Virus record (IMG/VR): IMGVR_UViG_3300025161_000004 | Location: 62,001-126,000 of that record | Length of the DNA: 64,000 nt | Strand: one strand, 5' to 3' | Shown here: positions 35,195-41,281 of the stretch, one piece after another | How the letters are laid out: every line of letters begins with the position of its first letter | Numbering within the stretch: the first letter of the stretch is position 1 | Program-made: the position numbers and the translations under genes | Notes under the pieces: generated by a model | What the model saw: the letters and a program-made list of their open reading frames with translations, nothing else | What the model was told of the DNA's origin: nothing | The model's database searches: none

Positions 35195-36218
35195 TTATTC
35201 TAATAGATTAAAACCGATTTTTCCATTAAATTCTTTGTGTCCGTTATAATTGTTGTAATTATAGAGTTCTGCTAAAGTATGCTCTTTATTTACTCTTATA
35301 TCAGAACCAATTCTTTCAAGAACTTTATTACACATGTCAATCGATAATCTTCCAAAATTAACTTCAGCTAACAATCTTCCTTTTCTAAACAAAGCCGTAT
35401 CAATATTTTCTTTGACATTGATAGTTGCTAAAATCTTTATCTTAAAAAGATCACCCATAATACCATCACAAACGTTTAACAGTGTAGAGATTATATTATT
35501 TGATCGCATTTTTCTATCTATAAATAGATTTTCACTATCCTCAAATATAAGAATATTGTCTTTCAAATTTTGAATTACAAAACTCATATTTCTCGGCTCA
35601 AATAAATATTGAACCATGTCTTGTGTTACGTAAACAAAATCTTTTTTAACACTCTTCACTAAATGCTTTATAAGATAGGATTTTCCAGTACCTGGGTCAC
35701 CCATAAAAATAATTAATCCGCTTTTATCCATTGATAATATTTCTTGTAATTCATTAATGGTGAAGTTAATATTATAACTATCTTCATGTAATTCAAACTT
35801 AGGTAATGTAAATGGTATCTTGTTGATATTATAATTATCTGCAACAAGAAAATATACATTATCTTTTTTTTTCTAGACTTTTCTCGAAATCAATTAACAA
35901 AGCATTAATTTTTTCTGAATTTTTAAACTTACTACAGTAAAAATGTGATATTTTAAAAGTAATCAAAATATATGATTTATATGTTTTGTGAACTAAATGT
36001 ATCTCATTACTAAAATCTAATAAAATAGAATAACCTGCATTAAGTAATTTTTGTAATAAATCAGGGTTTATCAAGTTTTCATTATTATTTTTAAATATTT
36101 TATGGAATAATGTATTATTACTATCAATATTCATCACATCAAAAATATAACGGTAGTATAAAAAACTATTATATACCCCAATATATTTAGAATCTAATTG
36201 TTTATTTGTTCGAGTCAT
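35195..36218 (-). CDS. AAA+ ATPase apparently split by a frameshift at an A9 tract (joined product about 340 aa)
   Basis: Walker A 'GDPGTGKS', Walker B 'LIFED', 'LLNVCDG', 'ATIN', 'DTALFRKGR'. The ATPase frame is open for 44 codons upstream of 35731, back to the A9 tract at 35864-35872. Deleting one A fuses it to ORF 35859..36218. Confidence 0.7.
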
Positions 36219-37197
36219 AATGTTTGTTTATTATTTTAAAACTTCCTTTACTATATTGTACTACTACACCTTCAAACGGTTTACCATATAATTCTTTTAG
36301 GTCTTCAGAATATTTTTTTATTAAATCTGGCGTTAAAATCACGTTTTCTTCAACTAATTTCACCGTAGGTAAATCCATTTCCTTTGCAACATTAAGAAAA
36401 TAAAATTGATCGCCTTTACGTGCATATCTACGTTCATCAATCAAATAAACAGAAAACATTGCCCAACCATTACTCAATTTTGAGTGTGGATTAATCTTTA
36501 TTGATTGAATACCAATACCATATGATTCACCACGAATTGAAAGAGAGATTCTATACTTTTCACTAAACTCGGTAAGTTTCCTTTCAATATCATATCTTGA
36601 GACATTATTAGTATAGTTATTTGAAATTTCTAGCTTTAATTCATGTTTCCTACCCAAAACACCAAATGTTTTTTCGACGAAATGACGGTAAAATGAATTA
36701 CTTTGACCATCAATTTTTAAAAAAATATCAACCAATTCACCATATGGTAATTCTGAATTATCTAAATTTTCCCACCTTTCTTCATCAGTTACAGGAATAC
36801 CATATGGTAATTCTCCTTTTATTGAGATATCGGTTGGTGTGGGTGGTTCATAATGACTAATCCAAAGTAGTTCTGATACATCCTCACCAACATGGTAATC
36901 TTTAATTGTTTCGGAAATTTCCTTGGGTAATGCTGTGAATGGTATAATAATACCTTCACTCCAAATATCACGAAGTTTAACCGCCTTCACTCTTTTTTGA
37001 GAATATTTTTTATATTCTTGTGCCCACTCAGAATCTGGAAATACACTATCGGGTCGAACATAAATAACTTTATCACCAACCTTAAACTGATCTCTTTTTG
37101 TGATACATTTATACCCCAATACTGTACAAATATCTAAACGATCGGCGTTCGGATGATTGATAACTTCTTTTACTACTTCAATTGTTGCATCTCTCAT
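36202..37197 (-). CDS. ATP-dependent RNA ligase, DRB0094/Rnl5-like, with N-terminal OB (tRNA-binding-like) domain
   Basis: N-terminal 'HPNADRLD...V.G......F.VGD.V.Y..PDS'; motif I 'KIDG', III 'RGE.YG.GIQ', IV 'EGVV', V 'FKII'. Confidence 0.85.
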   Translation of the reverse strand: MRDATIEVVKEVINHPNADRLDICTVLGYKCITKRDQFKVGDKVIYVRPDSVFPDSEWAQEYKKYSQKRVKAVKLRDIWSEGIIIPFTALPKEISETIKDYHVGEDVSELLWISHYEPPTPTDISIKGELPYGIPVTDEERWENLDNSELPYGELVDIFLKIDGQSNSFYRHFVEKTFGVLGRKHELKLEISNNYTNNVSRYDIERKLTEFSEKYRISLSIRGESYGIGIQSIKINPHSKLSNGWAMFSVYLIDERRYARKGDQFYFLNVAKEMDLPTVKLVEENVILTPDLIKKYSEDLKELYGKPFEGVVVQYSKGSFKIINKHYDSNK

Positions 37198-37254
37198 GAA
37201 TTCAGGATTTTGTTATCAAAATTTTTTTTCTCGAAATTTCTATCCCTTATCTTA

Positions 37255-37262
37255 CAAATATA
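37255..37262 (-). promoter_or_regulatory. Bacteroidota-type -7 element (TATATTTG) upstream of the RNA ligase
   Basis: TAnnTTTG match 58 nt upstream of the ATG. Confidence 0.5.
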
Positions 37263-37315
37263 ACAAAAAATAATGTTTAAGACAGCTATTACATTGTAAA
37301 TTTTCTTTTTTCAAT

Positions 37316-37438
37316 TTATTTATTTTTGATTGATTTTTTGGTTTTAGATTTTTTTAACTCTCTTTTTTTTAGCTTTTTATGTTCTGAATTGTTTTTATTA
37401 ATCTTTTCCTGATTAATACCGTCAAGCCAAATATTCAT
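37316..37438 (-). CDS. Possible small Lys-rich protein (40 aa, MNIWLDGINQEK...)
   Basis: ATG-to-TAA ORF read by hand in the 500-bp gap; below the ORF-track cutoff. Confidence 0.3.
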   Translation of the reverse strand: MNIWLDGINQEKINKNNSEHKKLKKRELKKSKTKKSIKNK

Positions 37439-37641
37439 AAATTATGATTTGATTTTAACTTATCTTTTTATGGATTAAAAATAACAATAAATAATTTAAT
37501 TTTTATGAAAAAAAAATATTATTTATCTTTTTTACATATAAAAAACTACTTTTAAATCTATTCTCTCCAATGATTAAAAATATTTTTGAAATTGAGAATA
37601 ATATATTCAGGATAGTTATGATTAAAACTTCCATTTTTGAT

Positions 37642-37675
37642 AAAAAAAGGGGTATTCGTTCACATAAATACCCCT
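37642..37675 (-). terminator. Intrinsic terminator ending the TROVE-like/ARPP-like operon
   Basis: AGGGGTATT-loop-AATACCCCTTTTTTT. Confidence 0.75.
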
Positions 37676-37698
37676 ATAAAAATAAAATAAGTTAATTT

Positions 37699-38802
37699 TT
37701 AGATACTAAAATTACTTTGTTTGCGTGATTTAGCCCTTAACTCGGTAACCCTACGTAATGATTCTGGATTAAATCTTTCTCTTTTAACAATACTTACCAT
37801 GTGGTGATAATTCTCTTCAGAGATAACTTGACCAACATAACCAGTGTGTTTTAATATATAACTTTTTGGTAAAGAAGCAGTTGCATCACTTGGATTACCT
37901 GTAGTATCCAAAGTAGATTCAAATGTAAGATCAAGTAATTCTTTTACTTTATCTTCAACAGACTTGGTAATATTTTTCTTGGTTTTATTCAAAGCAGTTT
38001 CTATCTTGCTAAGAACATCACCTCTATTTACTTTAGAATATTCTTCAGTAAAATACTTCTTACCACTTTTCTTATTCAACTCACTGATAATAGCAAGTGA
38101 CCCATAGCAATCACGTATAAGTCTTTCCCATACTTGTTCAGCATAGGTAAATGAAGGAAACTTATCAATCGCAACTATTTCACCATCGATCAATACAATT
38201 GTACCAATCAAGTTCTTTGGTCTTTCAAAGTGTGCAATAAACTGTTCGAGTTTCTTGTCGTACTTATTAAAATACTTATCAAGATAATATCCAGTATTGG
38301 TATTGGTATCTCTACCTAATTTTTCAATAGCAGGATATATGTTTGCATGACCAACAGTATAACCTACTTTATCAAACAACATTTCTCTCATTGAGAGAGG
38401 TATCAAACGCATTTCGTTGCCGTTTGTATCTCTGATGTAACCTGTTTGTGAACCCTGTACACAACCAGCATCATCATATCTTACAGTAGATGATTTTGGC
38501 AAGTATGCTGACTTCACCATACCGTGATTTTGTGCTGATTGTTTAGTCATTATCGCCAATTGAGTTGGCATAATAACTTCCTTGTTTGATTCATTCTTAA
38601 ATATTAAGTTACCATAACCACTATTAGATGCTTTAACATCTTTAAATGGATTAGCAAATCTTTCATCCAAAGAAAATTCCTTGTCTGTAGTTAAACAAAC
38701 CAATTGCATATTCATTATTGATTGAACAACTATGTTTCCAGACGCATCCTTTACTGGTCTGCAACCTTTCAATAATTCGACAAATTCTTTCTGTGCATTC
38801 AT
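37699..38802 (-). CDS. ARPP/DUF6569-like protein
   Basis: 'YG.L.F.N......P......K..AQNH...', 'GCVQ.SQ.G' and 'G.IVLIDGEIVAID.FPS..Y...W..L' pattern, recognised from memory as ARPP-type; 11 nt downstream of the TROVE-like gene. Confidence 0.5.
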   Translation of the reverse strand: MNAQKEFVELLKGCRPVKDASGNIVVQSIMNMQLVCLTTDKEFSLDERFANPFKDVKASNSGYGNLIFKNESNKEVIMPTQLAIMTKQSAQNHGMVKSAYLPKSSTVRYDDAGCVQGSQTGYIRDTNGNEMRLIPLSMREMLFDKVGYTVGHANIYPAIEKLGRDTNTNTGYYLDKYFNKYDKKLEQFIAHFERPKNLIGTIVLIDGEIVAIDKFPSFTYAEQVWERLIRDCYGSLAIISELNKKSGKKYFTEEYSKVNRGDVLSKIETALNKTKKNITKSVEDKVKELLDLTFESTLDTTGNPSDATASLPKSYILKHTGYVGQVISEENYHHMVSIVKRERFNPESLRRVTELRAKSRKQSNFSI

Positions 38803-38813
38803 ATTCTTAATCT

Positions 38814-40451
38814 TTAGGCTTTGACATAATTTTTTCTTATTCTTGAAACATTGTTTGCTTCAATCAATTTTACTTGATTTAACAACCACTGTTTAGTATC
38901 AACTTCAAGCATCTTAGCACTCATTTGAGTAGCAATTGATGCTGGGTTGCTCACTGCAAGTAATGCAACATTCGTGTTTGCAATTGGTCTCACATTTGCA
39001 TTCATTTCAGCACCAACGATTGGTGAAATCTGGAATATAGGTAATGATCTCTGTGTTTCATTGATATATGTTTCAATTACTTCACCTGCCAAACCTTCAT
39101 ACTGATTTTCATAACCATCAGTGATTATAAAAATTGCATCATATTTATTTTGTTCACTTTCGTTTTTCAACAGAGAAACAAATGCTGTAGCAATATCAGT
39201 TGCCTCACCTTCAGTATTTACCACAACTTGAGTTTTAGATGATTTTTCCAAAACTTTTACAGTGAAATCAGCAATTGCTCTTGGAGTATTCTTTGATTCC
39301 ACTTTATTACCGAACATTGAGTTTGATCTATCAACAATAATTCCAATATTGTTGTACGCAAAACCAGTGATCTTATTAGATTCTGCAAGTTTATCAATTG
39401 CATTAATCAATTTAGCATCAAAACCATTTTCATAGCCAGTTTTATACAATGCCATGAAATCAGTCGCAGCTTCTAAATTAACTTCCTTAACTACACCAAG
39501 TTTTTCATTTTTCTTGGTCTGTCTTACTTGCTGATTTACAGAAGTAACTTCATTGTTTTTTCTAATCAATGCAAGTGTTGATTTTCTCAACAATTTAGTT
39601 GACCACATACCAGCATATTGTGGGTGTTTCTTATTTGAAACTAAACCAACCAATACTTCTTCAGGTACTTTAGTTACTGAAGTAATATCTTGTGTTGCAA
39701 CATAAAATTCGCTGATAATTGGAAATTCACTTTTTGAATAAAATGATTTATCACCCTTACCAAAGATGAATAAAAAAATCTTGTATAATTTTTCACTATT
39801 AAGAATTGGAGAATACTTTTTAAGAAAAGTATTACTGATTTTTACCTCCTTTTCATTTGAATAAACTCCACCACTTCTAATATACTTTTCAGCAATAGAA
39901 AGAAGAATAGATGTTTTCTTTTCACCATAGACGTGTTTTAAAATATTTCTAATCTTTTTTCTATATTTAACAGAATAAAACTCTAAATTGGGATTACCCA
40001 AAATGTAACCAAGTACTATTTTTCTTGCTCTTTCGTTATTAATTTTATTCTTGCGTAATAAAATAAACAAACGAAGCACATAAGAAATACCTAAATTTTT
40101 ATCTAGATTATACAATGCACCAAGAAGTGCTTTATCTGAAATACCATTATCAATCCAATCAATAGGATTAACAATATAACATGCACCACCATTAGCTGTA
40201 TTTTTAAATTCATTCAATATAGCTTCCTGAATAAATTTACCTGTAACACCATTTTGATTTGCAAGTATCAATGGTAATTCTTTTGATGTTGAATATAATG
40301 ATGATATAGCATTTTTTATTGCAACATCTTGCTCCTCTTTAGAATGATAATATGTAGCTCCACCTCTCGCACCACTTGCAATAGAAATACCATCAATTAA
40401 TGATTTTTTTATTACTGATAATTGTTTTGCGGTTAATACTAATTGTTCCAT
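38814..40451 (-). CDS. TROVE/Ro60-like protein with C-terminal vWA (MIDAS) domain
   Basis: About 360-aa basic helical N-terminal region starting 'GGATYY'; then MIDAS 'IIVDRSNSM', 'ATDIA', 'IITDGYEN'. About 545 aa, as for Ro60. Likely ATG is at 40451. The vWA call is firm; the TROVE call is inferred. Confidence 0.6.
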   Translation of the reverse strand: MEQLVLTAKQLSVIKKSLIDGISIASGARGGATYYHSKEEQDVAIKNAISSLYSTSKELPLILANQNGVTGKFIQEAILNEFKNTANGGACYIVNPIDWIDNGISDKALLGALYNLDKNLGISYVLRLFILLRKNKINNERARKIVLGYILGNPNLEFYSVKYRKKIRNILKHVYGEKKTSILLSIAEKYIRSGGVYSNEKEVKISNTFLKKYSPILNSEKLYKIFLFIFGKGDKSFYSKSEFPIISEFYVATQDITSVTKVPEEVLVGLVSNKKHPQYAGMWSTKLLRKSTLALIRKNNEVTSVNQQVRQTKKNEKLGVVKEVNLEAATDFMALYKTGYENGFDAKLINAIDKLAESNKITGFAYNNIGIIVDRSNSMFGNKVESKNTPRAIADFTVKVLEKSSKTQVVVNTEGEATDIATAFVSLLKNESEQNKYDAIFIITDGYENQYEGLAGEVIETYINETQRSLPIFQISPIVGAEMNANVRPIANTNVALLAVSNPASIATQMSAKMLEVDTKQWLLNQVKLIEANNVSRIRKNYVKA

Positions 40452-40515
40452 AAACAAATTTTATATTTAAAAACTAATCTATGTCTTTATTTTCCGTATT
40501 TTCTTATTGATACCT

Positions 40516-40546
40516 CAAAGGTAAGTAATTATATTTTTCCGTCAAA
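40516..40546 (-). promoter_or_regulatory. Bacteroidota sigma70-type promoter of the TROVE-like gene
   Basis: -33 TTTG (40546-40543), 19-nt spacer, -7 TACCTTTG (40523-40516). Confidence 0.7.
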
Positions 40547-40553
40547 ATAAAAT

Positions 40554-40584
40554 AAAAAAAAGTGATGAATTTTTTACTCATCAC
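40554..40584 (-). terminator. Intrinsic terminator closing the ncRNA cluster
   Basis: GTGATGAG-TAAAAAA-TTCATCAC-TTTTTTTT. Confidence 0.75.
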
Positions 40585-40660
40585 CTCTTCAAAAATCTTG
40601 AATAATTTTATTAGGTTATATTTTGACTTACTTATACAGTAAGTATCTAAATTTCTTATT

Positions 40661-40751
40661 TAAAGGAATATTTCTTTTGTATTTTTTTGGTCGTAAAAGT
40701 GAAATTTTACAATTTAACTATTTTACTGAAAATACAAATAGTTTTCCTTTA
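40661..40751 (-). ncRNA. Structured small RNA unit A (Y-RNA-like, about 91 nt)
   Basis: Ends pair (TAAAGGAA/TTCCTTTA); internal loop; second helix TTTGTATTTT/AAAATACAAA; contains GGAAAACT-N11-CAGTAA; inner hairpin GTAAAA/TTTTAC. Confidence 0.6.
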
Positions 40752-40868
40752 ATGTCTTCAAATTAAAACCACCTATTTTAATTTTTTAATAGGAATATAC
40801 AAGTTCGATTTTTTTAATTGGTTATAACTTAAAATTTGAATCAAAAATCGTAACTTCATTATATATAG

Positions 40869-40941
40869 TAGCGAGAGCAGGATTCGAACCTGCGATCTTG
40901 TGGTTATGAGCCACACTAGTTAACCGCTTCTCTATCTCGCA
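40869..40941 (-). tRNA. tRNA-Met (CAT), initiator-like, no encoded CCA
   Basis: Cloverleaf: acceptor TGCGAGA/TCTCGCT with 1:72 mismatch, anticodon arm TGTGG-CTCATAA-CCACA, T arm GCAGG-TTCGAAT-CCTGC; 3' end ACTA; weak D stem. Confidence 0.85.
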
Positions 40942-40945
40942 ATAT

Positions 40946-41072
40946 GATTTAGGGAAAAATTTGTCAGTTATTTTTTTTGACAGATAAACACTAACACTAC
41001 TTATTAGTAAATTATCACTCTATAATAATTTAATTAAATTACTGTAATAACTTCAAGTTTTCCCATTAAATC
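40946..41072 (-). ncRNA. Structured small RNA unit B (Y-RNA-like, about 113-127 nt)
   Basis: Ends pair (GATTTA/TAAATC, GGGAAAA/TTTTCCC); upper helix AGTTATT/AATAACT; contains GGAAAACT-N11-CAGTAA. Confidence 0.6.
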
Positions 41073-41104
41073 TTTAAATAACAACCATCTGCTGTTATTT
41101 TATG

Positions 41105-41240
41105 TGGGGGAGGCAGGATTCGAACCTGCTATACTTACTATTGGATTAGTAATATGACCCAATTACTGTAAATATAATCAGTTCTCCAAAAAAGGAGTAG
41201 TTTAAATTATATTTGAAAGTATTCGTTTTACTACTCCCCC
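41105..41240 (-). ncRNA. 136-nt tRNA-like RNA (unit C) whose anticodon arm is replaced by the permuted repeat motif
   Basis: Acceptor GGGGGAG/CTCCCCC-A; D-like arm AGTA/TACT; perfect T arm GCAGG-TTCGAAT-CCTGC; central arm AAATATAAT..CTCC-T6-GGAG-AACTG-ATTATATTT then ACAGTAA; extra hairpin TTACTA/TAGTAA. Confidence 0.75.
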
Positions 41241-41250
41241 ATTTGTTTCA

Positions 41251-41281
41251 CAAAAATAAACTGTAAAATTTATCTTGTCAA
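41251..41281 (-). promoter_or_regulatory. Bacteroidota-type promoter of the ncRNA cluster
   Basis: TTG at 41281-41279, 20-nt spacer, -7 TATTTTTG at 41258-41251, about 10 nt upstream of the tRNA-like 5' end. Confidence 0.65.

Follow-up and report, generated by a model that had tools for sequence, protein, structure and literature searches.

Ro60 genes of bacteria and phages are accompanied, within 4 kb and on the same strand, by Y RNAs that carry tRNA-like T-AS-D modules (PMC4201824). Among phages, Ro60 with upstream Y-like RNAs is known from mycobacteriophages, CcrColossus, Bacillus phage G and phiLo (PMC4201824, PMC12135203); the Ro60 protein of phiLo binds two upstream Yrl RNAs (PMC12135203), and a review noted ROT/TROVE proteins in a few jumbo phages (PMC7824862). 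Proteins of the ARPP family have been described from NAD/ADP-ribose (ADPr) conflict contexts, listed as ARG, HIRAN, WYL and deacetylase, and carry a conserved Cys and Gln (PMC9503650). Here, a locus is described in which a Ro60-like protein and an ARPP protein are encoded directly downstream of a set of tRNA-related RNAs. It lies in a 64-kb window (the whole stretch of DNA that was analysed) of the 246.8-kb jumbo-phage contig UViG_3300025161_000004 (IMG/VR), and it probably encodes a very divergent Ro60/Y-RNA-type ribonucleoprotein system tied to tRNA biology. Every gene of the locus is encoded on the minus strand, in the order RNA operon, 545-aa Ro-like open reading frame (ORF), 367-aa ARPP-1 ORF and 331-aa RNA ligase ORF. 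The two proteins of the system are:

38814..40451, minus strand: Ro60-like protein of 545 aa, with a predicted helical TROVE-fold region (residues ~1-358) together with a vWA (von Willebrand factor A) domain that has a MIDAS (metal ion-dependent adhesion site)
37699..38802, minus strand: ARPP-1 family protein of 367 aa (Pfam PF20208, 2.5e-14, 53.7 bits against a cut-off of 27)

The 545-aa protein gave nothing usable in phmmer and profile searches of Pfam, PHROGs, NCBIfam, PADLOC and PDB sequences. Hundreds of relatives at about 58% identity were found on contigs of 200-360 kb, with representatives down to 23%; GenBank phages yielded no close relative, the sole match being LR756500, an uncultured 462-kb phage (27% identity). 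In an alignment of 85 family members, D374 and D445-G446 of the MIDAS were invariant and S376 and S378 were conserved in at least 90%. The structure predicted from this alignment by AlphaFold2 (AF2) had a predicted local distance difference test score (pLDDT) of 93 and a predicted TM-score (pTM) of 0.91, and was helical over residues 1-358 and alpha/beta over residues 368-532. When it was compared with the PDB by Foldseek, the best 12 matches were all Ro60, aligned over the full length (~575 columns) with a probability of 1.0 and E-values from 3e-7 to 5e-4. The Ro60 structures matched were Xenopus 1YVP, human 9NEP/9NFA, Deinococcus Rsr 2NVO and Thermus phage phiLo 9L5Y, and past the top 12 only isolated vWA domains were retrieved. 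Foldseek against BFVD returned Ro-like/TROVE proteins of a Gordonia phage and of giant viruses as top matches, and the closest named clusters in the ESM atlas were TROVE and vWA_Ro60.

Profile comparison pointed in the same direction. The Ro-like gp220 of mycobacteriophage Bxz1 served as positive control and matched Pfam TROVE at 9e-50 and vWA_Ro60 at 4e-54. HHalign of the family profile against a canonical Ro60 profile built from 25 sequences (relatives of Bxz1 gp220) gave a probability of 85.8% and an E-value of 5e-6 over 299 columns (119-452), which comprise half of the TROVE region, the VKYR motif and the vWA domain with its MIDAS, the MIDAS motifs of the two families being aligned to each other. 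The 25-sequence profile was required for this result; against a single Ro60 sequence only 25% was reached, confined to the vWA domain. The overall fold of the predicted model is that of a HEAT-repeat TROVE ring with a vWA domain (AF2 and Foldseek). As modelled, the 545-aa protein has a Ro60-like fold and is a remote Ro60 homologue beyond the Pfam family boundaries. This bears out the first-pass annotation of the window, made from the sequence alone, which had read the protein as a divergent TROVE and vWA protein and had proposed the structural comparison with Ro60/Rsr.

In all 84 phage loci, and in 57 of the 62 bacterial ones, the gene immediately downstream of the Ro-like gene encodes ARPP. 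Bacterial partners scored 102-126 bits to ARPP-1 and matched ARPP-2 as well. Ten residues are invariant (Q91, H93, C114, R139, E193, R230, C232, Y233, G234 and Q325), and with its invariant Cys, His, Gln and Arg the protein looks like an enzyme. Its AF2 model (pLDDT 86.6) had no significant structural relative among solved structures in Foldseek. The best PDB matches, to PNPase cores, had an E-value of 0.04, a probability of 0.05 and a TM-score of about 0.1, and were rejected as noise.

The RNA part of the locus carries the motif GGARAACT-N11-CAGTAA. Three exact copies are present in the window (40723-40747, 41039-41063 and 41163-41187, all on the minus strand), against an expectation of 0.00 in dinucleotide shuffles, a number beyond chance; a fourth, mutated copy at about 40597-40657 had been missed. 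The motif is conserved in homologous loci but proved to be one strand of a larger stem scaffold. The scaffold has the consensus GGRAR-AAC-U-NNNN-GUGUUUA-CAGUAA, and of 179 distinct units 160 have a spacer of 12 nt. In helix P1 (5-9 bp) the purine run 5' of AAC pairs with a downstream pyrimidine run, and in helix P2 (~10 bp) the NNNNGUGUUU segment pairs with AAAUACN'N'N'N'. Between them lies an internal loop, in which AAC faces an A-rich strand, and the ACAG(UAA) junction leads into the cargo.

Four topologies of this scaffold were distinguished. In class C it surrounds a tRNA in normal order, and in class B a circularly permuted tRNA-like RNA with the order T arm, acceptor 3' strand, (N)CCA-containing loop, acceptor 5' strand, D arm and anticodon arm. 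In class D it surrounds a small hairpin alone, with no tRNA. Class A is a tRNA-like RNA with normal termini, in which the scaffold forms an internal hairpin between the D region and an anticodon-like arm, in the order P2', P1', capping loop (often GNRA), P1, AAC and P2. A further permutation was seen by eye at L086:3690-3830 (Minicystis rosea; comparison loci carry L numbers), with the order anticodon arm, T arm, closed acceptor and D arm; the scaffold there opens the tRNA-like RNA between D and anticodon arms, which is the class A insertion point.

The proposed folds were supported by covariation. In the class B alignment (26 sequences), 96.4% of cells were paired against 81.9% in shuffles, and 22 of 37 pairs showed compensatory change, a number reached by 0 of 500 shuffles. 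The covariation score was 0.407, compared with 0.129 for shuffles and 0.03-0.09 for slid controls, and all six of six helices were supported. For class A (alignment A5, 43 sequences) the corresponding values were 96.3% against 83.6%, with compensatory change in 20 of 30 pairs; by helix, pairing was 100% in the acceptor, 99% in P1 and 95% in P2. An alternative "S" helix of class A, joining the acceptor 5' strand to the P1'/P2' region, was paired in 79% of cells and was rejected as the main fold. Units defined by the motif only had a downstream partner strand for P1 and P2 in 40% of cases, against 3.2% after shuffling. A mutual-information scan in fixed register gave no usable signal, because the RNA classes were mixed. 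By entropy, the scaffold is the most conserved part of class B (0.18-0.31 bits, against 1.15-1.2 bits for the covarying acceptor stem and anticodon-loop positions 1-5, which vary most). Two traits of Y RNAs can be compared directly with these structures. Pairing of the ends into a stem with a conserved internal loop is present, as judged by covariation, except in class A with its internal capped hairpin. The module of T arm, closed acceptor and D arm is found in relatives (class B), and the window itself, with its class A unit and decayed class C units, lacks it.

Linkage of scaffold and protein genes in phages was scanned in 80 non-redundant loci, the upstream zone being the 2.5 kb 5' of the Ro-like gene. 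On the coding strand of this zone the relaxed motif occurred at 1.28/kb; elsewhere its density was 0.106/kb, and on the opposite strand 0.056/kb. Homologous loci thus carry the motif, enriched 12-fold just upstream of the gene, and the co-occurrence check that had been suggested for the motif came out positive. In a structure-aware scaffold scan of the same loci, the density upstream was 1.24/kb, compared with 0.125/kb in shuffled sequence (0.13-0.18/kb elsewhere or shuffled). Units lie 0.1-3 kb upstream of the Ro-like gene and on the same strand, with two to eight per locus, and 208 of 211 covariance-model matches were on the coding strand. The class B covariance model gave exactly one match above 100 bits (100-161) in each of 66 phage loci, and for the relative L080, with 24% identity, it still scored 76.9 bits. 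Distant, GC-rich relatives among the phages (24-28% identity) keep the arrangement P1, [A/G]AC, N12-13, CAG, P2', P1' with unrelated stem sequences, and in L080 and L082 the scaffold cargo is the tRNA(CAU) itself. Anticodons of orthologous units switch even among close relatives of the window (CAA/GUA, CGA/UAA). Flanking protein genes vary among the distant loci.

Some scaffolded tRNAs in normal order carry suppressor-type anticodons, namely UCA in L013:5782-5856, L024:4076-4151, L066:5730-5806 and L073:5381-5454, and UUA in L040:5408-5479; this suggests that stop codons may be recoded in those phages.

The first-pass annotation had described the system as a phage version. It does occur in phages but is not specific to them, as a survey of one genome per prokaryotic species yielded 62 further loci in bacteria. 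Carriers were mainly Planctomycetota and Myxococcota, including many metagenome-assembled genomes of Pirellulaceae and Polyangiales; complete chromosomes with the locus include those of Minicystis rosea, Novipirellula sp. SH528 and Stieleria magnilauensis. The bacterial gene pair sits within co-oriented arrays of 20-40 tRNA genes, with 22 tRNAs upstream and 15 downstream of the pair in Minicystis and 24 upstream in Rhodopirellula sp. SM50. Scaffold density, determined from 54 loci, was 1.15/kb upstream, against 0.06/kb in shuffled sequence and about 0.15/kb elsewhere. Compared with the remainder of the locus, the kilobase upstream of the Ro-like gene had an about 8-fold higher density of scaffold matches, and because of this clustering most tRNAs of the arrays appear to be scaffold-free. 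One scaffolded tRNA was compared in 11 Planctomycete genomes: 97 of 122 positions were invariant, and the anticodons were CUU (7), UAG (2), UUU (1) and AUG (1). Since the co-occurrence persists with differing flanks, scaffold RNA, Ro-like protein and ARPP form a conserved entity tied to tRNA genes. Homologues embedded in arrays include L086 (Minicystis rosea CP016211, 8.26 Mb), L099, L103, L108 and L131; in Planctomycetota, tRNA-Cys(GCA) always lies before the scaffolded tRNA.

In the window, no ORF of at least 60 aa was found between 40458 and 41366, merely two ORFs of 47 aa with TTG/GTG starts. The stretch had been read as an ORF-free region of 900 bp with its own promoter and terminator, and both signals were recovered. 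The relatives used for comparison (L008 and L009 among them) encode Ro-like proteins 86-89% identical to that of the window. In the order of transcription, the features are:

41281..41253, minus strand: predicted promoter-like site of the RNA operon, TTGACA-17-TATTTT, the top sigma-70-like site of the region (10/12 consensus)
41103..41240, minus strand: unit A, a class A RNA; Rfam tRNA match of 34 bits (41105-41240) with a 79-nt insertion skipped
41078..41098, minus strand: hairpin between units A and B, nearly invariant in the window, L008 and L009
40947..41069, minus strand: unit B, scaffold intact, cargo decayed; R1 model 29.3 bits, scaffold only
40868..40941, minus strand: initiator-like tRNA-Met(CAU) (ARAGORN; Rfam 58.6 bits) with a U1.U72 mismatch and no encoded CCA
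40801..40856, minus strand: structured spacer with a long-range stem of AAGUUACGAUU with AAUCGAACUU, seen by eye
40659..40754, minus strand: unit C, scaffold intact, cargo cut to an acceptor minihelix; R1 model 30.8 bits
40597..40657, minus strand: remnant of a fourth unit, class D, with the motif mutated (AAC to AAU, CAG to CUG)
40590..40556, minus strand: intrinsic terminator of the RNA operon, a 15-pair stem and U tract, kept in L008 and L009
40505..40545, minus strand: candidate promoter of the protein operon, -35 TTGACG and a weak -10; outside the promoter scan list
37675..37648, minus strand: intrinsic terminator after ARPP, a 10-pair stem and U tract, 24 nt past the ARPP stop codon

The -35 TTGACA of the RNA operon is invariant in L008 and L009, and TTGACG of the protein operon is invariant with its flanks across three relatives; promoter-like sites in this AT-rich DNA are no commoner than expected by chance. 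The RNA stretch had been described as holding, in order, a tRNA-like RNA, a structured RNA, tRNA-Met and another structured RNA. All of these are present, but the two structured RNAs, units B and C, are decayed forms of RNAs that are intact in relatives. The tRNA matches in the stretch are tRNA-Met at 40868-40941 and the interrupted Rfam match at 41105-41240, both on the minus strand, and no tRNA model detected a tRNA in units B and C. The subclade of the window lacks the permuted class B RNA. Other matches to the relaxed motif in the window (e.g. 55438, 18517 and 5814) were unmatched by the covariance model and were taken as chance.

Unit A is intact by comparison with these relatives. Its acceptor stem is formed by 41240-41234 with 41111-41105 and its T arm lies at 41129-41113. 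The inserted hairpin, between the D region and the anticodon-like arm, consists of P2' (41214-41205), P1' (41197-41194), the loop, P1 (41187-41184), AAC (41183-41181), P2 (41179-41170) and ACAGUAA (41169-41163). The L009 counterpart is a plain tRNA-like RNA of 72 nt without the insertion. In unit B, P1 pairs GGGAA(AA) at 41064-41058 with 40958-40952, AAC lies at 41059-41057, P2 pairs 41052-41046 with 40972-40966, and ACAGUAA follows at 41045-41039; the minimum free energy (MFE) fold returned P1, the internal loop and P2. The cargo of unit B is a normal tRNA in L008 and L009, and the window copy has diverged, its T arm being short by 11 nt. In a sequencing run of unknown type (run X7, 15 Mb, 2025), one contig of 255 nt at a depth of 45 covered 40947-41201, i.e. 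the 3' part of unit A and the whole of unit B, with nothing more of the 5.2-kb locus, which is compatible with an abundant RNA but is no proof of one.

The tRNA-Met(CAU) of the window has two D-stem mismatches. A tRNA(CAU) was present upstream of the Ro-like gene in most loci, with U1.U72 in place of C1.A72 in 39 of 44 distinct copies; it is initiator-like by A11:U24, and the copy of L039 is very close to E. coli tRNA-fMet. Eight relatives have a long tRNA(CAU) of 83-89 nt with a hairpin in the variable region (L024:5104-5192, L026:5181-5266, L034:6461-6547, L041:2954-3039, L047:5226-5313, L051:4421-4503, L052:3579-3667 and L075:5850-5938). In the spacer of L008 and L009 a stem was seen by eye at the equivalent place with another sequence, CCUACGAGU with ACUCGUAGG. 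In unit C, P1 pairs 40752-40744 with 40668-40660, AAC lies at 40743-40741, P2 pairs 40738-40729 with 40685-40676 and CAGUAA lies at 40728-40723; the MFE fold gave a P1 of 9 bp and a P2 of 10 bp. By comparison with L008 and L009, a deletion of about 40 nt has taken out the anticodon and T arms of unit C. The fourth unit is intact in L008 and L009 (GAAGAAC...CAGUA...UUCUUC). The decay of the window array is not an assembly error, because identical pieces of DNA were found in two other metagenomes; the unit C sequence was identical in another metagenome.

Downstream of the gene pair follows a neighbour gene:

36202..37197, minus strand: Rnl5-type RNA ligase of 331 aa, with an N-terminal OB domain and a nucleotidyltransferase domain

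The ligase matched the Naegleria RNA ligase NgrRnl (5COT) at 5e-24 over residues 4-260, as well as the Pfam PHA02142 OB domain and RNA_ligase. A two-gene operon followed by an RNA ligase had been proposed. The gene order was confirmed, but membership of the ligase in the system was not, since the terminator at 37675..37648 splits ARPP from the ligase and ends the two-gene operon, and among phages a ligase after ARPP was restricted to the subclade of the window. By sequence comparison, the system does not include the RNA ligase as a conserved component. The roughly 450 nt from the ARPP terminator to the ligase start (37198-37647) hold only ORFs of 40-43 aa, and no Rfam match reached the gathering score. 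The ligase forms a three-gene block with a 119-aa ORF and a 178-aa AAA ATPase (35195-37197, minus strand), which is confined to the window subclade and inserted between ARPP and the homologue of a 333-aa ORF which in most of the other phages comes immediately after ARPP. A Rnl5-like ligase match (27%, 2e-23) was also seen in Thalassoglobus neptunius KOR42 (L098:7666-8523), 1.1 kb downstream of ARPP on the same strand; because of this independent ligase in a bacterial locus, the association is rare but recurrent. In L080:7923-9062, two genes downstream of ARPP, there was a weak match to an MTPAP-like nucleotidyltransferase (23.7 bits, Pfam cut-off 27), a palm domain of the poly(A)/CCA-adding type. 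Elsewhere in relatives (L009:3386-5141, L028-L032:1539-3368 and L049:2190-4104), a DnaB-like helicase match was short or split and preceded by more than 1.5 kb of unexplained DNA, for which an intein, an intron or the insertion of a homing endonuclease is a possible explanation.

For the divergent Ro60/Y-RNA-type system a mechanism can be proposed by analogy. The scaffold would be the binding site of the Ro-like protein, corresponding to the bulged Y RNA stem to which Ro60 binds; the scaffold particles may then display tRNA-shaped modules, and ARPP may serve as effector or as a ligand of the MIDAS. Most likely the system would survey or protect tRNAs, or provide decoys of them, when phage and host are in conflict or translation is under stress, a field suggested because the system resides in tRNA operons and arrays and because the anticodon varies between close relatives. 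The changing anticodons fit a bait or decoy role but may also reflect weak constraint.

Several observations weigh against this reading. Pfam TROVE (PF05731) was matched by 0 of 85 family members, the window protein giving no match even at E<=10, and vWA_Ro60 (PF25045) was likewise not matched; TM-scores of the predicted model to the 12 best Ro60 matches were low (0.29-0.48; 0.42-0.48 over the full length). The Rfam Y_RNA and YrlA models found nothing in the window RNA region at E<=10 or in four relatives at E<=1, and the Ro-binding motifs GNCGAAN0-1G and GGUCCGA are absent from the scaffold RNAs. Conserved synteny by descent explains part of the co-occurrence in the main phage clade, and much of the window array is decayed (units B and C, the fourth unit and tRNA-Met). 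A search of sequencing runs returned DNA runs and one run of unknown type, and no RNA-seq run. Finally, class C units have an ordinary-looking tRNA, with ACCA encoded, inside a scaffold that is simply a duplex of leader and trailer and could be a processing signal. The failure of the Rfam models also bears on the status of the RNAs: because Y_RNA and YrlA fail here, the scaffold RNAs are regarded as an RNA family of their own, as the first-pass annotation had claimed; at the Bxz1 control, the YrlA model matched upstream of gp220 at 32.5 bits, which is sub-threshold.

The last of these objections leads to the main rival explanation, in which the P1/P2 leader-trailer stems direct host or phage nucleases to excise tRNAs and the Ro-like and ARPP proteins are linked to them in some other way, without binding the stems. 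Class C scaffolds exactly flank tRNAs in normal order, in the phage copies ACCA is encoded and an A-rich trailer comes after it, and the units share one operon from promoter to terminator. Moreover, a duplex of 15-20 bp with a bulge looks like known RNase III sites, for which rRNA and T7 provide precedents. Against excision, however, there is almost no variation in the unpaired AAC and ACAG, from phages rich in AT to Planctomycetota rich in GC, whereas the stems are free to covary; this pattern indicates sequence-specific recognition. The class A scaffold is an internal loop-capped hairpin rather than a leader-trailer duplex, excision of the class B scaffold would split the RNA, and class D units hold no tRNA at all. 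In bacterial arrays, scaffold matches are concentrated next to the Ro-like gene, with few elsewhere in the locus. Taken together, a processing signal is considered unlikely.

Less probable still is that the protein pair acts without the neighbouring RNAs, the vWA/MIDAS domain and ARPP working on ADP-ribose, NAD-derived molecules or proteins and the Ro-like fold scaffolding something other than RNA. It would agree with the NAD/ADPr conflict contexts described for ARPP (PMC9503650), whose Cys and Gln are invariant here, and the Ro-like protein has no detectable RNA-binding sequence motif. Nevertheless, every solved structure matching the model is an RNA-binding Ro60, and, despite changing flanks, the genes stay linked to scaffold RNAs and tRNA arrays in phages and in at least two phyla of bacteria. 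A decaying phage tRNA cluster, with the motif as a functionless remnant of tandem duplication, is very improbable and already largely refuted for the family: although the window has lost the T arm of unit B, the anticodon and T arms of unit C and the motif of the fourth unit (unit D), and its tRNA-Met has D-stem mismatches, compensatory changes occur in all helices, one intact class B copy is present in each of 66 phage loci (100-161 bits), conservation extends to 24% protein identity and into bacteria, and the window scaffolds are intact though their cargos decay.

Starting again from the Ro60/Y-RNA-type system, a wider conjecture may be put forward, which we consider less likely than not. 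The locus may represent a widespread ribonucleoprotein module, made up of a Ro-like ring, ARPP as an enzyme and scaffolded tRNAs or mimics with fast-changing anticodons, that travels within mobile tRNA arrays in jumbo phages, Planctomycetota and Myxococcota. In conflicts centred on tRNA it might serve as bait or sensor, or repair the damage done by anticodon nucleases or translational stress, and the scaffold might be a portable protein-binding handle grafted at normal, permuted and internal positions. The roles of Ro60 and Y RNAs are poorly understood, and this family ties a Ro-like protein to real tRNAs, mimics and arrays more directly than the described systems do. ARPP adds a second conserved protein to a Ro-type system. 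The topological variants of one scaffold provide a natural series suited to defining the binding determinant. Although the phage is known from metagenomes only, the hypothesis is directly testable, because the system is carried by cultured bacteria (Minicystis rosea DSM 24000, Novipirellula sp. SH528, Stieleria magnilauensis, Thalassoglobus neptunius and Roseiconus nitratireducens). It may also help to explain the persistence of large supernumerary tRNA arrays and the tRNA supply of jumbo phages under host attack.

A literature search for the trio of scaffold RNA, Ro-like protein and ARPP found no description of it, and the nearest systems share different parts of the arrangement. As in Ro60/Rsr with YrlA/YrlB, a ring and vWA protein is predicted here with non-coding RNAs just upstream on the same strand, and in these RNAs the 5' and 3' termini form a stem with a conserved internal loop; as in YrlA, a distal tRNA mimic with the permuted order T arm, closed acceptor and D arm is found, here in class B (PMC4201824). 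Unlike Ro60/Rsr, the present family matches neither Pfam TROVE nor vWA_Ro60, both of which are matched by Bxz1 gp220, and its obligatory partner is ARPP instead of RtcB/RtcA. Unlike YrlA/YrlB, the present RNAs conserve AAC...ACAG, not GNCGAAN0-1G, and have no Rfam YrlA match; two to eight scaffold RNAs of four topologies are held by one locus, some with complete normal tRNAs, and class B retains an anticodon arm, in contrast to YrlA. The arrangement had been called non-canonical at the outset, and both the motif and the ARPP partner do set it apart from Ro60/Y RNA/RtcB.

Another likeness is to phiLo, where a phage Ro60 has two upstream Y-like RNAs, Yrl1 and Yrl2 (PMC12135203), and whose structure (9L5Y) matched the present model at an E-value of 3e-5. 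The phiLo Ro60 is, however, recognisable by sequence, and the phiLo Yrls have the CGAA motif and no tRNA cargo. As described, phiLo Ro60 has no ARPP partner and was reported to recruit the host PNPase (PMC12135203). The Rsr-Yrn1-PNPase complex of Deinococcus radiodurans (RYPER) is similar in concept, as a Y RNA there tethers the Ro ring to an effector, and Rsr (2NVO) is a structural match. Unlike RYPER, the present system shows no PNPase link, the PNPase-like Foldseek matches of ARPP being insignificant.

In circularly permuted tRNA genes (Cyanidioschyzon merolae) and in two-piece tmRNA the gene halves are permuted and the fold is kept. The order of class B is likewise permuted with the fold retained. 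Here, however, the break is bridged by a conserved stem resembling a protein-binding one, and non-permuted and internally inserted forms of this scaffold exist as well.

As in published bacterial tRNA arrays (PMC8421152), the bacterial homologues lie within 20-40 co-oriented tRNA genes, the phage copies being in a small tRNA operon. The proteins linked to those published arrays, or embedded in them, include an HNH endonuclease, rtcB and dpsA, and the available part of that account makes no mention of a Ro-like/ARPP pair or of scaffolded tRNAs. The ARPP protein is of the same Pfam family as the ARG-centred conflict ARPP and retains its Cys and Gln, whereas the contexts listed do not include a Ro-like protein with tRNA-like RNAs as partners (PMC9503650). 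What is new is, for ARPP, a partner beyond the published contexts (PMC9503650) and, for the gene pair, a location in bacterial tRNA arrays, which goes beyond the accessible part of PMC8421152. For the system itself, and as judged from sequence, the novelty is a protein clade unseen by TROVE models, a different RNA motif and scaffold, and arrays of four topologies that carry real tRNAs.

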